Below are positions 6,344-20,944 of a stretch of 21,298 nucleotides of DNA, in pieces. Position numbers and translations under genes: made by a program. This DNA is from Fonticula alba ATCC 38817 (lineage: Eukaryota > Protista > Nucleariida), in the NCBI GenBank assembly GCA_000388065.2, contig KB932202.1; one strand, given 5' to 3'. Under the pieces are notes generated by a model. The model saw nothing but the letters and a program-made list of their open reading frames with translations. It searched no databases and had not been told where the DNA came from. Each line of letters opens with the position of its first letter. Position 1 is the first letter of the stretch.

Positions 6344-6683
6344 NNNNNNNNNNNNNNNNNNNNNNNNNNNNNNNNNNNNNNNNNNNNNNNNNNNNNNNNN
6401 NNNNNNNNNNNNNNNNNNNNNNNNNNNNNNNNNNNNNNNNNNNNNNNNNNNNNNNNNNNNNNNNNNNNNNNNNNNNNNNNNNNNNNNNNNNNNNNNNNNN
6501 NNNNNNNNNNNNNNNNNNNNNNNNNNNNNNNNNNNNNNNNNNNNNNNNNNNNNNNNNNNNNNNNNNNNNNNNNNNNNNNNNNNNNNNNNNNNNNNNNNNN
6601 NNNNNNNNNNNNNNNNNNNNNNNNNNNNNNNNNNNNNNNNNNNNNNNNNNNNNNNNNNNNNNNNNNNNNNNNNNNNNNNNNNN
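6344..6683. other. Assembly gap (340 N)
   Basis: Run of N immediately upstream of the TatD gene. Confidence 1.
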
Positions 6684-6761: not shown

Positions 6762-9176
6762 ATGTTTGGTGCCCTCCTGCGCTCCCCCCTCGCCGCTCTT
6801 CCCCTGCAGCACACTCCTGCTCCCGTCCGCCTGGCCGCCACCGCCGCCGCCGTCTCCGCCGTTCGCCAGAAGAGCACCCAGGTCCCGGAGCCCGCAACCA
6901 AGAAGCGTCGCTCCAAGAAGTCTCTCCTTCCGGAGGCGGTCTCCACCACCCCCATCACCTACCTCTTCAGCAGCAACCAGGGATCCTCGTCGCTGGTCTC
7001 GTCTGGACGCGTGGCTACTACCTCGAAGACCCGCAAGGAGCGCCAGCCGATTTTCCCTGCGCCCCTCGCCGCCGGCCAACAGCAGCAGCCCACCAATACC
7101 GCCCCTGGCTCGGTCCCCTGGTTCATTAATCCCGCAGCCTCAATGACCACCCCCCGCGGCGCGAACAACAATCCCGCCAAGCCCAGCGACAAGGGCCATC
7201 CCGCTGGTGCCGAGGTGCCCTTCCCCCCGGCCAAGCCGGGGGTGGATTTTGTCGGTATGACCCCTGTACACAACTATTCCCCCCCCCCCCCCCCTTTCTT
7301 TTCCAAGCTGACACGCGCGCACGTCAACACGCCCAGACATCGGTGTCAACCTCTGTGACCCGATGTTCCGCGGCCTCTATCGCGATCGGCCCTATCACCA
7401 GGACGATTTGGCCCAGGTGCTGGAACGAGGCTGGGCGTCTGGTGTCCGACGCATGATCTCCACCTCAGGTCGGTGGTCCGAGCTGATTGAGTCCCTGCGT
7501 CTCTGCCAGGATGACGGTATGTCTCCTTCCTTTCCGCCCTCCACATCTAGAGGAACGCCAGGCTGGCGGGGGCGGGGGGGGGGGGGGGGGAGGGGGGATG
7601 TGACATCCCGCGCGAGGCGCTGTGGAGTCATCTAGTCAGGCCGCGATCCGTGGAAATCCTCTGCGACTAATGGACAATGCAATTCCCAAAAGCCCGACTT
7701 GTCACGACGGCTGGTGTGCATCCTACCCGCACGTCCGAGATGCTGGAGCCAGCCCTGGACCGCTTGGCCGCGGAGCCGCTGAATATGCATGGCATCTTCC
7801 CTGGCCCCTATCAGCCCGAGGCGCTGGAGGCATTCGCCAATCTGGACACGTACAGCGAAGCCGATCGGGTGGATCAATACATCAAGGCCCTCAGGGCCAT
7901 CCTCAAGGAGGACGCCCGTCAGGCGGCTGTCCGGCCGAATGGCTCGCGCAAGATCGTCGCGATTGGCGAGTGTGGTCTCGGTACATCTTCTCGCCCGTGC
8001 ACATTCATCTGCCCGCCCCCTCCGCCACATCCGCCCCGGTGCCTGCGACAGTTGGCTTACGCTGCCCTAACTGCTGCCCTCTCTCTGTTCATCTGCTGCT
8101 TTGGCAGACTATGATCGCCTGGAGTTCACCCCGAAGGATGTCCAGATCAAGTGCGTGTGCCAGTCCCCGGGGGCGGNNNNNNNNNNNNNNNNNNNNNNNN
8201 NNNNNNNNNNNNNNNNNNNNNNNNNNNNNNNNNNNNNNNNNNNNNNNNNNNNNNNNNNNNNNNNNNNNNNNNNNNNNNNNNNNNNNNNNNNNNNNNNNNN
8301 NNNNNNGGGGGGGGGATCGGACCTTTCATTGAAATGGGCTCAGATACAGATGCTGACAGCTGGCTGCTCTGCCCTGCGCGAGTGTAGGATGTTCAAACGC
8401 CACTTCCAGCTGGCCGACAGCACCGGGCTGCCGATGTTCCTGCACAACCGCAACACCGGCTCGGACTTTTACGACCTCGTGCGCAAGTATCGGAAGCAGA
8501 TTCGCGGCGGCGCTGTGGTGCACTCCTTCACCGGGACCCACGAAGAGCTGCAGATGGCTCTGGAGCTGGACCTCTTCGTGGGCATCAATGGCTGGTACGT
8601 GTGTGGCCTTGCCTTGCGCGATTTGTGTGCCTCTCCTCTTTTTCTTTTTCTTTTTTTTTTTGCATCCCTCTCCCCTCGCCTGCCCATGTCTTACCTGATG
8701 TTGGGGAAACACGCGCACACGCACACATCCACAGCTCCCTCAAGACTCAGGAGAACCTGGATGTGGTGAAGGCCATCCCGGTGGAGCGACTTCTCCTGGA
8801 AACCGATGGTCCCTGGTGCACCATTCGGCCATCGCATGCCGGGCATGGCTTCCTGCGGACCAAGTACCCGGAGTCTCGGCGCGACCGGCACAAGTCGCAC
8901 ACCCTGGTCAAGGATCGCGCCGAGCCGTGCCACATGAACTCGGTGCTGGAAGTAGTGACGGCGGTCCGGTATCCGGGCGGCCCGGCTGCCTTCGCCGCGC
9001 TGTCGGATGCCGAGAAGGATCTGGCCGAGCGCCGCCTGGCTGAGCGGGTGTACCGGAACTCGCTGCAGCTCTTCTTCCCGGAGGAGTATGCCCGGCTGCG
9101 GGCCGAGGAGGAGAAGCTGTCCACCGAGGGCATCGAGGGCCAGGTGACCGTGATCTCCATCGAGGACAGTGCCTGA
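6762..9176 (+). CDS. TATDN1: TatD-family nuclease, eukaryotic TATDN1 type, with an N-terminal extension of about 160 aa; 6 exons, about 550 aa
   Basis: Exons: 6762-7254, 7337-7516, 7693-7980, 8108-8150, 8388-8594, 8735-9176. Total 1653 nt, in frame. Donors GTATGA, GTATGT, GTACAT, GTGCGT, GTACGT. Spliced motifs: DIGVNLCDPMFRGLY, TTAGVHPTR, VAIGECGLDYDRLEF, LPMFLHNRN, VVHSFTG, VGINGCSLKT, LLLETDGPWC, RAEPCHM. The E, H, H and ETD catalytic positions of TATDN1 are present. The start is uncertain because a CAG acceptor-like site lies 5 nt before the ATG and a gap is just upstream. Confidence 0.93.
8177..8306. other. Assembly gap (130 N) inside TatD intron 4
   Basis: N run flanked by G-rich sequence. 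The flanking exons join in frame (AA|G, giving IK-MFKRHF), so no coding exon needs to lie in the gap. Confidence 1.
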
Positions 9177-16752: not shown

Positions 16753-19583
16753 ATGGTGACCTTGCCGGCCGAGGGTGCCTGGCCCCATGGGTGGTTTCCC
16801 GGATTGTGGCGCGCAACCTCTGCCGATGCCGAGATCCCGGCTCAGCAGCCGGACTACACCCCGGCCGTGGTCCGGCACTTTAGGGGCCAGCCTATGATGG
16901 CGCCAGGCGATCCTATCCAGGAGAACGCCCAGGCCGACAAGACCGCGGCCATGGTGCATGGGTTCCTGGCTGGCCAGCCGGGGCTGGTTTCGCCTGCTTC
17001 GATTGAGACCCTGTCCTCTGCGCTGACTGGGCCCCAGAGAGCGCCGTTTATTCTGCATGCCGGCCCCTGTGCTGAGATGTTTGCCGATCAAGATGGCCAG
17101 GGCCCCAGCAGTGCCAGCGGCCTCGTCGAGTGCCGGGCCACCCCGGAGTCCGGGTGTGGAAGCTGCCGCACTGGCGAGTGCCCTGTGGCATATGCACAGC
17201 ACCTCAACCGGGTGTCAGATGCTTTTGTTGCCATGTCCCCCGGTCACTCTGATGCCGGGGTTGTTCGGATCTGGCGCGGCGCTGGCCAGGTACGTACCAA
17301 CAGGTGCCCTGCCTGTGGTCCTATGCTGTCCCCTCCCTGTGCACCAGCTCCTCTGACCCGTAAGACCCACACACACACACACATGTATACATATATGCGC
17401 ATGCATGTTTGCATGTATACATATATGCGCATGCATGTTTGCATGTGCACATTCATGCATGGCTTGGATTGGTGTTGGCGTCGCAGTACGGCAAGCCACG
17501 CTCCTCTTGCTTCGAGCAGTCTCCCTTGACCGGTGAGCGGATACTTTCCTATCGGTAAGTGCATGCACACACACACACACATGACAATGTCACAGTCACA
17601 CCTCCTGCAACATCCCTCCCCCTCCCCCCTCAGACTGACTCTCTTTCCCTTGCGACGTCCGCAGGGGCGATATGATCAACTCCGATGCTCCATGCGGTGC
17701 GGCGCGGTCGCACGATCCTCGGCGCCTGGTCCGGTGCGTGCCCCTCCGTACGCACGCCTTGGGGACATTGATTAGCTAGGGGACTGACATTCTGCCGGGC
17801 ACCCTAAGTGCGCACGAGGCAGCCCGCGGAGCCTTGGATCGCCTCGGTGCCCATGGATACCTTTGGAGCCCGAATGACGCTGACAGCCACCAGGCCATCT
17901 TCACCTCGCACGAGGCGCTGGTCCTTTCGTATGAGGAGTCCCAGACGCGCGTGGAGCAATGGGCCTCGGGTGGCCAGCTGGCCGCGGCCTACGCCACCAG
18001 CGGACACCTGGTGTGGGTGGGCGACCGGACTCGAGACCACCCTGGCACGGGGCCACGGCAGCCTAGTGGCCATCTCCTCTGGGCCCAGGGGGTCCGTAAT
18101 CCCCTGGGGATCAAGCTGTCGGCCAGGGTGTCGCCGGAGGCGCTGGTTTTCGCCATCCGATCGGGGCTCGGCTGCGAGCAGCTCTTTCGCCCGGCGCCCG
18201 GGGTGGCGGCCTCATCCCAAGCAAATGACCCCCTACCTGGGCGCGCGGTGCTGATCATCGCACGATATGGGGCCCGCGCGGCCCCGCGAGCCGTGGGGCA
18301 GCACATTCGGATCCTCCGTGCGGCCGGGCTTATGCCGGGCGACTCCGGCCCGATGGATGGGGATGGTCGCATCTTTGCCCAGGCCCATGCAGCAGCGGCA
18401 GCGGTCCTGGGCGCCGGCCCGCGGACCAACCTCCTGGGGGACGCCCCGTCGGGGGCATTTGGCGAGCTGCTCGGTGGGGCCTTCCGTGGGTGGGCCCCTT
18501 CGGGCCGGGAGGTGGCGGACATTGCACGCGTGGCAGCCCACCGGGCGGGGGAGCTGTGTGCCGTTCCCGACGCAGCCCTGGAGGTGGATGCCCTTTTGGG
18601 GCGGGCCCTGCCTCGGGGGACCTCCCTCGCCGCCTGGCCGGCACCCCTCCTTAGGGCTCTTGGCCAGCATGTGGATGAGGTGGCCCGGGCGGCGGTGGCC
18701 GCCGCACGCGAGAACCTGGCTGACAGTGCTGAGGAAGCGCCCCTCGAAAGTCCGGACCCCTGGCTGCTGCCTTGTCGTTGTCGTTCCTGCGCTCGGGCCC
18801 GGGTCCACTGGCTGGCGGACCCGATGCACGGGAACACGGTGTCCATTTCTCCCCGAGTGGACCCGGGGGTTTTGGCCCCGATGAGCGACCCGGCCACAGC
18901 TGGGGAGGCCGTTCGGTGGGCCGTCGGCCCTGGGTCTCCGAGCGCCCCCTCCAGCCCGATGGAACTCCCGCTGGCGGAGGAGCCGGCTCCGCAGGCGGGG
19001 GTGCCAACAGCGGCATGCCGGGGGTGTGCCCCGCCGCCGGATACCTTCCGGCCGAAAACCCGACACCTGCGCGCGCTGGCGGCCGAAGTGTGTGCGCAGC
19101 ACATCGGCCTGGGGCCCGGGGCCTCCCTCGGGGGACTACACATGGAGGTGGCCCCGCGCCAAGTCAGCGGTATGTGTCTCCCTCCCCATCATCGGCCTCT
19201 GGTGGCCATGCCTCTTTCTCCCTCTGCCCCTGTTTGTCTGTCTGGCCTCTTTCGCTGCCCGATCCTCCCCTTGCGCATTGCTGACATGGCGCCGTCTGCC
19301 CTGTGCTTTCGACCATCCATGCGCTCCCCACCTCCCCCTCCCCCTCATGTCCCGCTCGGGCGCAGAGTGTGTGGACGACACGAACGAGCAGAACACCGCG
19401 GCGGCGGTATTTTCACAGGCCTGGCGGGCAGCCGCCCGGCATGGCTCACAGTCGTGTGTCGCCTGCAATGGACAGGCCTCGCCCTACCTGACGGCGTGCG
19501 ATCCGCGACTGTCCGCCGGGCAGTCTGTCTTCCTGGCGGAGATGACCGCCCGGCTACTGAGTCTCGGGCCGCTGGCCCGGTGA
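16753..19583 (+). CDS. Type II (AroAII) 3-deoxy-D-arabino-heptulosonate 7-phosphate synthase with large insertions; 5 exons, about 750 aa
   Basis: Exons: 16753-17289, 17487-17554, 17665-17733, 17809-19169, 19366-19583. Total 2253 nt, in frame, ending in TGA. Donors GTACGT, GTAAGT, GTGCGT, GTATGT. Type II motifs appear in order after splicing: W-x-P-x-x-W-R...AQQPDY, FILHAGPCAEMF, VVRIWRGAGQ|YGKPRSS, LSYR|GDMIN, DPRR, FTSHEALVLSYE, LVWVGDRTR, NPLGIKL, IIARYG, WLADPMHGNT, KTR, GGLHMEV, S|ECV, YLTACDPRL. The start codon is provisional and an upstream exon cannot be excluded. Confidence 0.92.
17369..17460. repeat. (CA)n followed by a 30-bp tandem repeat (2 perfect copies and 1 degenerate) in DAHP synthase intron 1
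   Basis: CATGTATACATATATGCGCATGCATGTTTG at 17382-17411 and 17412-17441, then the degenerate CATGTGCACATTCATGCAT at 17442-17460. Confidence 0.9.
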
Positions 19584-19982: not shown

Positions 19983-20944
19983 AAAAAAACCCGGCAGAAC
20001 TTGCCGAGGAGGCGCACCGGCACGCCACAAGTATTTCCTTCGTCGGACGACTGAATTTCAACCTGCCCTCCGCAGATCCGAACCGCCTGCTGCTCCTTGG
20101 TGAAGGTGTGGCCGGTGAGCGGGGTGNNNNNNNNNNNNNNNNNNNNNNNNNNNNNNNNNNNNNNNNNNNNNNNNNNNNNNNNNNNNNNNNNNNNNNNNNN
20201 NNNNNNNNNNNNNNNNNNNNNNNNNNNNNNNNNNNNNNNNNNNNNNNNNNNNNNNNNNNNNNNNNNNNNNNNNNNNNNNNNNNNNNNNNNNNNNNNNNNN
20301 NNNNNNNNNNNNNNNNNNNNNNNNNNNNNNNNNNNNNNNNNNNNNNNNNNNNNNNNNNNNNNNNNNNNNNNNNNNNNNNNNNNNNNNNNNNNNNNNNNNN
20401 NNNNNNNNNNNNNNNNNNNNNNNNNNNNNNNNNNNNNNNNNNNNNNNNNNNNNNNNNNNNNNNNNNNNNNNNNNNNNNNNNNNNNNNNNNNNNNNNNNNN
20501 NNNNNNNNNNNNNNNNNNNNNNNNNNNNNNNNNNNNNNNNNNNNNNNNNNNNNNNNNNNNNNNNNNNNNNNNNNNNNNNNNNNNNNNNNNNNNNNNNNNN
20601 NNNNNNNNNNNNNNNNNNNNNNNNNNNNNNNNNNNNNNNNNNNNNNNNNNNNNNNNNNNNNNNNNNNNNNNNNGGGGAGGGGACATACACATTCCGAGCG
20701 CCACAAGTGTGTGATATCGGGGCCGTTCAAATGGCCTCTCCGTTGCGTCGGCGACGAGACACACTCGGCCTGGGCTCCACGCATGATCGTCCTGCGGCCA
20801 CATCTCTCGAGCCCAGCCAGAGGCGGAGCCCGGGGCGAGCCACGCAGGTGCACATCCGTCGGCACTTGACGAGATAAGTACCCACCGATGGATCCAATTA
20901 AAGCCCTCAATTGGCTTGCACTCGAGAACAGCCTCCAAGGTCAT
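19775..20944 (-). CDS. Possible unknown multi-exon gene, interrupted by a gap
   Basis: ATG at 20944 with an in-frame stop just upstream. Complex, non-repetitive peptides on both sides of the gap are in the same frame, although the gap length is only an estimate. A phase-matched GT(20000)...CAG(19947) intron removes the poly-C tract and gives LLGN-DKPSVHIAFTLFG. An AAG acceptor at 20096 is preceded by CTCAC. No family was recognised. Confidence 0.35.
20127..20673. other. Assembly gap (547 N)
   Basis: N run flanked by G-rich sequence on both sides. Confidence 1.

Follow-up and report, generated by a model that had tools for sequence, protein, structure and literature searches.

Can cysteine pairs scattered over several loops of one enzyme give that enzyme a new metal or redox control? 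[quoted passage not shown] A sequence-only reading of this DNA had noticed CxxC motifs in four insertions of the enzyme and had proposed that they form zinc (Zn) or iron-sulfur (Fe-S) sites, or thiol switches, in place of a lost allosteric control by amino acids. The gene is already public, as a "hypothetical protein" at NCBI and as a phospho-2-dehydro-3-deoxyheptonate aldolase in UniRef; what is new here is the description of its insert architecture. Beyond a nominal excess of CxxC, the analysis gave no positive support for such sites, and the overall balance leans against a dedicated module. We consider it reasonably probable that the CxxC pattern is a nominally unlikely coincidence in the loop expansions of an active, type IIB-like DAHP synthase, the insert cysteines being a putative by-product of translating GC-rich DNA and not parts of a dedicated metal or redox regulatory module.

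Cysteine Motifs and Inserts

H696_01550 has five exons on the + strand, separated by four spliceosomal introns with GT..AG at every border, and the spliced exons reproduce identically a protein of 750 amino acids (aa) with 19 cysteines (P0001). All four motifs described by the sequence-only reading are found, exactly, in this spliced protein:

16753-19583, + strand: H696_01550, gene for a short, IIB-like type II DAHP synthase; its spliced translation equals P0001, it matches PF01474, and RNA joints are found in it
16753-17289, 17487-17554, 17665-17733, 17809-19169 and 19366-19583, + strand: the five exons, whose splicing reproduces P0001
17131-17181, + strand: motif 1, C127-x7-C135-G-S-C138-x4-C143, in insert 1
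18773-18790, + strand: motif 2, C547-R-C549-R-S-C552, at the end of insert 2
19016-19027, + strand: motif 3, C628-R-G-C631, in insert 3
19455-19466, + strand: motif 4, C709-V-A-C712, at the edge of insert 4, with C712 on the boundary

An insert was defined as a segment of at least 4 aa that at least 70% of homologues lack, by column occupancy in a 143-sequence alignment; alignments with 29, 22 and 142 homologues were made. P0001 carries 12 such segments, which together make up 344 aa or 46% of the protein and hold 12 of its 19 cysteines (13 with C712, at the edge of insert 4). The motifs had been placed outside the conserved core, and all four do lie in or at the edge of segments that homologues in these alignments lack. 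The four motif-bearing insertions therefore exist as described, but they belong to a larger set of 12. Their extents are as follows:

17116-17193, + strand: insert 1 (aa 122-147), in the beta1-alpha1 loop, with the four-cysteine cluster at 17131-17181 and CGSC at 17155-17166; missing in all homologues
18332-18799, + strand: insert 2 (156 aa, aa 400-555), which on the non-catalytic face separates alpha6 from beta7 and ends in CRCRSC at 18773-18790; missing in all homologues and kept in the mRNA
18851-19051, + strand: insert 3 (aa 573-639), a Pro-, Ala- and Ser-rich stretch of the beta7-alpha7 loop that carries CRGC (19016-19027); about 8 residues in homologues; kept in the mRNA
19389-19466, + strand: insert 4 (aa 687-709) and its edge, flanked by ECV and CDPRL and carrying CVAC at 19455-19466; 23 residues longer than in homologues; within an mRNA contig at 19365-19498

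An AlphaFold2 model of P0001, built on the 143-sequence alignment, reached a predicted template modeling (pTM) score of 0.77, with a predicted local distance difference test (pLDDT) score above 90 in the (beta/alpha)8 barrel. Inserts 1, 3 and 4 are all beta-to-alpha loops on the catalytic face of this barrel, as had been expected for them, and insert 2 is on the opposite face (this model; PMC6435475). Strand 99-104 and helix 144-161 flank insert 1, which has a short hairpin predicted at 129-135 and pLDDT block means of 50-62. Insert 2, between helix 383-396 and strand 556-561, has predicted helices mostly at pLDDT 34-56. Residues 578-631 of insert 3, which lies between strand 556-561 and helix 645-659, fall below 50 and have no secondary structure, while insert 4, between strand 665-672 and helix 729-744, includes a helix (690-704) at about 66-75 followed by residues 704-715 below 50. 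At the cysteines themselves, pLDDT is about 62 for C135/C138, below 50 for C628/C631 and C709/C712, and 79-90 (block means) for C547-C552, so that three of the four motifs (1, 3 and 4) are in low-confidence segments of the model (pLDDT 30-62). Judging from the model, the inserts are probably for the most part flexible or weakly structured.

In composition, Ala, Gly, Pro and Ser make up 48.5% of the insert residues, Lys is absent, and Cys accounts for 3.5%. A six-frame translation of the window, used as a composition-matched stand-in for the proteome background, contains 3.54% Cys. Such agreement with random translation is in keeping with young sequence under little constraint, more than with an enrichment of cysteine by selection. 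Interconversion of CGY and TGY codons would be, from the sequence, a plausible neutral source of cysteine.

No Pfam family, and no zinc-finger family among them, matches any of the inserts even at E = 1. An Atlas search with insert 2 yielded no usable feature match, and structural template modeling (TM) scores there did not exceed 0.37; on these three results we rejected a known domain inserted at this position. A thioredoxin-like family or fold was likewise not detected in any insert by Pfam, nor by Atlas in insert 2. Canonical Fe-S clusters use spacings such as CX3CX2C or CX2CX2CX3C, and nothing here fits spacings of this kind: the motifs read C-x7-C-x2-C-x4-C, C-x-C-x2-C and, twice, an isolated C-x2-C.

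Two details of the cysteine codons and their surroundings may be recorded separately. CRCR in motif 2 goes back to a hexamer that occurs as two exact copies in a row (TGTCGT TGTCGT, 18773-18784), which produces CxC and not CxxC spacing, and five of the insert cysteines directly precede an arginine, an arrangement that suggests the CGY/TGY interconversion. Tandem repeats or slippage as the origin of the inserts were also considered and rejected: Tandem Repeats Finder (TRF) and repeat searches place all tandem repeats of the gene in its introns, except for the motif 2 hexamer.

Family, Fold and Conserved Core

P0001 matches the Pfam family PF01474 (DAHP_synth_2) at E = 1.6e-52 (178.9 bits, cutoff 27), in six stretches interrupted by the inserts, and relatives in the Protein Data Bank (PDB) match it at E 1e-10 to 1e-11. 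With Foldseek, the model matches type II DAH7PS structures from M. tuberculosis, C. glutamicum and P. aeruginosa at E ~1e-24, and the top target-normalised TM-score, 0.81, belongs to PhzC (6BMC). Across the 143 sequences, all listed invariant or nearly invariant family columns are retained: C106, E108, R175, KPRS 182-185, R298-T299, K327, R377, DPMHGN 562-567, H669, E671 and D724-L727 of CDPRL. Cys106 of GPCAE is presumably a metal ligand, by homology with the M. tuberculosis enzyme. The core features that frame the inserts are:

17062-17076, + strand: GPCAE motif with the nearly invariant Cys106; C106 and E108 are nearly invariant in the 143 sequences
17852-17902, + strand: site of the absent type IIA helices alpha2a and alpha2b (aa 240-256); a gap of about 45 columns relative to long forms, through which short forms align straight
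18818-18835, + strand: DPMHGN motif (His565); columns D562-N567 nearly invariant
19139-19150, + strand: HMEV motif (Glu671); H669 and E671 nearly invariant
19497-19511, + strand: CDPRL motif (Cys723, Asp724); D724, P725, R726 and L727 nearly invariant

The type IIB class is defined by the missing alpha2a and alpha2b helices together with a retained N-terminal extension; its characterised member is dimeric, with helices alpha1 and alpha8 forming the interface, and shows no sensitivity to aromatic amino acids, and type IIB enzymes are naturally unregulated (PMC6435475). P0001 has the type II N-terminal extension and, by sequence and modelled fold, H696_01550 is classified as a short-form, type IIB (PhzC-like) type II DAHP synthase. 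We infer that the enzyme is probably active. With the barrel retained, along with every conserved residue for catalysis and substrate binding, it should condense phosphoenolpyruvate (PEP) with erythrose 4-phosphate (E4P), or a close analogue, on a divalent metal, as its relatives do.

This class assignment bears directly on the idea that the inserts replace a lost allostery. The allosteric element, alpha2a/alpha2b, is indeed absent, but its loss probably dates back to the bacterial type IIB lineage rather than to Fonticula. Since type IIB enzymes are unregulated already in bacteria, no replacement is required.

The core has also changed in two cysteines outside the motifs. Those of KCGP and SCDPMHGN, nearly invariant in long forms, are replaced in Fonticula by Leu (KLSA; window 18113-18118, aa 327-328) and Ala (LADPMHGN; window 18812-18817, aa 560-561). 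The KCGP cysteine is variable in short forms too, and the SCDPMHGN cysteine is still present in most of them.

Relatives and Origin

An exhaustive phmmer search of 1.84 billion representatives yielded the query alone below E = 1e-30, and therefore no orthologue. The next matches, at E 1e-27 to 1e-17, are short bacterial forms that include Streptomyces and Pseudonocardia. A FastTree phylogeny places P0001 in a 27-row clade (Shimodaira-Hasegawa (SH)-like support 97) together with 26 proteins, every one a short form and those of Streptomyces and Pseudonocardia among them; the branch of P0001 is 2.23 long, against a median of 0.92, and the placement is to be read with the usual caveat for long branches. 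Compared with P0121-P0269, it groups with short bacterial (Streptomyces- and Pseudonocardia-like) type II enzymes, apart from the alphaproteobacterial long forms tested. The pattern looks like an old horizontal transfer followed by rapid evolution of the Fonticula DAHP synthase. Horizontal acquisition from bacteria would be the natural reading of these sequence comparisons.

Several of the closest bacterial relatives (P0121, P0154, P0188 and P0235) carry a short DAHP synthase fused to AMP-binding, CM_2 chorismate mutase, or Chorismate_bind and GATase domains, and these fusions fit roles in secondary metabolism. Type IIB enzymes are also typically encoded in a biosynthetic cluster, whereas the neighbours of H696_01550 are ordinary eukaryotic genes (TatD, ribosomal protein L37e, SF3A2, a Myb protein and a PALP enzyme). 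Fonticula has been reported to be without biosynthetic gene clusters (PMC13322982). The contig that holds the gene is a 3.9-Mb F. alba scaffold; given this scaffold and the eukaryotic neighbours, H696_01550 is a resident nuclear gene and contamination is ruled out. The history we propose is that of a type IIB enzyme nested among bacterial secondary-metabolism enzymes, which now resides in the F. alba nuclear genome with four introns. Its inserts most likely represent lineage-specific loop expansions that are GC-rich, have an abundance of Ala, Pro and Gly, and arose in the horizontally acquired enzyme.

Chance and the Weight of the CxxC Pattern

Several results weigh against a coincidental origin of the pattern. 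The sequence-only reading had allowed that four CxxC motifs might simply be expected at this cysteine frequency, and the shuffles (P from 2e-4 to 7e-4) did not explain them away. At least four CxxC arose with P = 7e-4 (0.07% of trials) when the whole protein was shuffled and with P = 2e-4 when the insert residues alone were shuffled, and four well-separated motifs with P = 1.8e-4. The cysteine frequency of the inserts is double that of the core, and the six-frame translation of the window shows an enrichment of C-x2-C that is only about 1.3-fold (65 observed, 50 expected). On the structural side, the CRCRSC segment is modelled fairly confidently (block means 79-90), and low AlphaFold confidence without alignment depth is weak evidence of disorder. 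Inserts 1, 3 and 4 occupy neighbouring catalytic-face loops, and inserts 1 and 4 flank the dimer-interface helices alpha1 and alpha8 (PMC6435475), a placement that makes a joint site geometrically conceivable.

Considered for H696_01550 alone, the CxxC excess is real, at roughly 1e-3. The pattern was, however, picked from a whole-genome scan, and for this reason the excess is weakened and fails a genome-wide look-elsewhere correction. The Fonticula proteome is estimated at several thousand proteins, among which a few such CxxC cases are expected by chance. As a composition-matched null, the remainder of the window was translated in six frames and divided into pieces of 344 aa, the combined length of the inserts, with 11.4 Cys on average; of 156 pieces, one held at least four CxxC and six held at least three. 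When the whole window is translated in six frames, C-x-C shows an enrichment of about threefold, as the TG/CA microsatellites in this DNA would lead one to expect. We thus continue to favor coincidence in GC-rich loop expansions, with two alternatives that assign a function to the cysteines considered below.

A Possible Site in Insert 1

If any of the motifs marks a real site, the four-cysteine cluster of insert 1 (C127-x7-C135-x2-C138-x4-C143) is the best candidate. Its role could be to bind a structural Zn, or to cover the active site with a lid that responds to redox state, and the remaining CxxC motifs would then be incidental. We regard this as unlikely, although it is the alternative that deserves most attention. 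Four cysteines fall within 17 residues, on a predicted short hairpin that leads into the N-terminus of a helix. Such a geometry is common in small Zn sites, but here it is modelled at a pLDDT of only 50-62, and a cluster this tight arises by chance in 8% of shuffles (P = 0.08 for this feature alone, which is unremarkable). The position is suggestive as well: the cluster lies in the beta1-alpha1 loop of the catalytic face, right after Cys106 and ahead of alpha1, a dimer-interface helix (PMC6435475). P0001 has no N-terminal extension past the start of its homologues, which suggests a cytosolic enzyme, in which structural disulfides would be unlikely and Zn the more natural partner for clustered thiols. 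Set against these points are the lack of a family match, the lack of an orthologue among the 1.84 billion representatives and the lack of any RNA contig over insert 1.

A Proposed Site Assembled From Several Inserts

The proposal made by the sequence-only reading was broader. In it, CxxC pairs of different inserts would meet, either inside one subunit or at the dimer interface, to form Zn or Fe-S sites or a thiol switch that replaces amino-acid allostery. We judge this improbable. The nominal excess of CxxC across four separate inserts (P ~2e-4) speaks for it, as does the adjacency of the loops that carry inserts 1, 3 and 4, but motifs 3 and 4 are in segments with pLDDT below 50 and motif 2 belongs to the other barrel face. 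Plant type II enzymes, correctly described by the sequence-only reading as thiol- or redox-sensitive, offer a precedent in their requirement for dithiothreitol (DTT) or thioredoxin f, according to a passage in PMC11750804 citing Entus et al. (2002). However, the Fonticula inserts have neither an Fe-S-typical spacing nor a family match, the naturally unregulated state of type IIB enzymes (PMC6435475) leaves nothing that must be replaced, and with no orthologue there is no support from conservation.

The evolutionary scenario that would follow is similarly doubtful: a eukaryote acquired an unregulated bacterial type IIB enzyme, which then gained cysteine-rich loops, on the catalytic face and at the dimer interface, that bind Zn or Fe-S or form a thiol switch, placing entry into the shikimate pathway under a redox or metal control with no described parallel in this family. 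Were it true, no earlier DAHP synthase would have been known to have regulatory metal or thiol sites made from lineage-specific insertions, and the gene would clearly exemplify how an enzyme acquired horizontally can come under new control in its eukaryotic host. The likelier lesson is methodological. GC-rich genomes such as that of F. alba would accumulate long loop expansions whose cysteine content is that of random translation, and scattered CxxC motifs in such loops consequently need conservation or biochemical support before they are taken for metal sites. Evolutionary interest in the gene itself is moderate: it is a bacterial-type short DAHP synthase with introns, nearly half inserts, in a relative of fungi.

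Gene Model, Transcripts and Locus

The gene model agrees with both database and transcript evidence. Translation of 17810-19173, compared with a protein collection, gave a 100% identical match to the 750-aa H696_01550. RNA evidence came from contigs of four small 2012 runs that contain this stretch, compared over 3001 letters. These contigs skip 17733-17807 and 19169-19364, with GT..AG at the ends, and another contig joins 17553 to 17664 (joints 17553/17664, 17732/17808 and 19168/19365). Since introns are spliced out of them at GT..AG ends, the contigs are transcript assemblies. Three introns are confirmed exactly by RNA, and intron 1 is supported by the loose 5' end of the contig that joins 17553 to 17664, which matches the end of exon 1. 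H696_01550 is expressed. One contig is continuous and identical to the window over 18234-19168 and then 19365-19498, and a second over 18506-19168; because these spliced contigs run unbroken through inserts 2, 3 and 4, all three are kept in the mature mRNA. Insert 1 (17116-17193) had no coverage among the contigs of the four runs, and of its five in-frame GT..AG pairs (those of at least 45 nt were enumerated) none has a good donor and acceptor. Unspliced in-frame introns as a source of the inserts are thereby ruled out for inserts 2-4 and unlikely for insert 1.

An annotation or assembly artefact, with inserts that are unrecognised in-frame introns or misassembly and absent from the mature protein, is highly improbable overall and is excluded for inserts 2-4: an open frame proves little in surroundings with a GC of 0.6-0.72 where all reading frames are open, insert 1 is without RNA coverage and the contigs could hide rare isoforms, but the contigs that splice out the true introns cross 18234-19168 and 19365-19498 intact and without differences from the window, insert 1 lacks an in-frame GT..AG pair with good signals, and the GC at third codon positions (GC3) of the inserts is exon-like (0.74, against 0.77 in the core), compared with an intron GC of 0.51-0.64.

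Some features of the locus stand apart from these arguments. Intron 1 contains a (CA)8 microsatellite together with a 30-nt unit that is duplicated perfectly in tandem (window 17368-17446), and intron 2 contains a second (CA)8 (window 17566-17581). Runs of N, which are assembly gaps, occur in the window at 6344-6683, 8177-8306 and 20127-20673, the last about 550 nt downstream of the DAHP synthase stop. The PALP-family (pyridoxal-phosphate-dependent) gene, L001 19631-21728, lies beyond the end of the window, three genes downstream of the DAHP synthase.

Comparison With Known Systems

Two known systems show thiol dependence or a site built from cysteine pairs. Plant type II (IIA) DAHP synthases belong to the same Pfam family, are eukaryotic and have a thiol- and redox-dependent activity. 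They differ from the Fonticula enzyme in being long-form, plastid-targeted and highly conserved, with no counterpart to its inserts, and to our knowledge their redox dependence has not been mapped to CxxC-bearing inserts. The LID domain of adenylate kinases from Gram-positive bacteria carries a Cys4 site of CxxC...CxxC pairs that binds a purely structural Zn and has been gained and lost between lineages. That site is built into one compact sub-domain and is conserved in many species, whereas the Fonticula pairs are scattered over four unrelated, unconserved segments.

The closest structural comparison is PhzC of Pseudomonas aeruginosa (PA1901, 6BMC; PMC6435475), with which the Fonticula protein shares the fold (TM-score 0.81), the N-terminal extension, the lack of alpha2a/alpha2b and the metal- and PEP-binding residues. 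Like PhzC, the Fonticula enzyme is expected to be insensitive to aromatic amino acids. PhzC, however, is a bacterial protein of about 400 aa encoded in a phenazine cluster, while the Fonticula protein has 750 aa, with 12 extra segments (344 aa) that hold 12 of its 19 cysteines, and is encoded by a nuclear gene with four introns, outside any biosynthetic cluster and on a very long branch.

By sequence, the best relatives are the short DAHP and aminoDAHP synthases of Actinomycetes, such as Streptomyces WP_385084180 and a protein from a Pseudonocardia metagenome-assembled genome (MAG), at E 1e-24 to 1e-27 and with 40-44% identity over the matched stretches. They share the ECVD motif variant and a clade with the Fonticula protein. 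RifH-type enzymes are mentioned among the short type II and aminoDAHP synthases in PMC13322982. The substrate of the Fonticula enzyme may be E4P or imino-E4P, and the specificity of an aminoDAHP synthase is possible. What separates the Actinomycetes short forms from the Fonticula enzyme is again the inserts: none of them has these segments or their cysteine pairs, and several carry fused domains instead.

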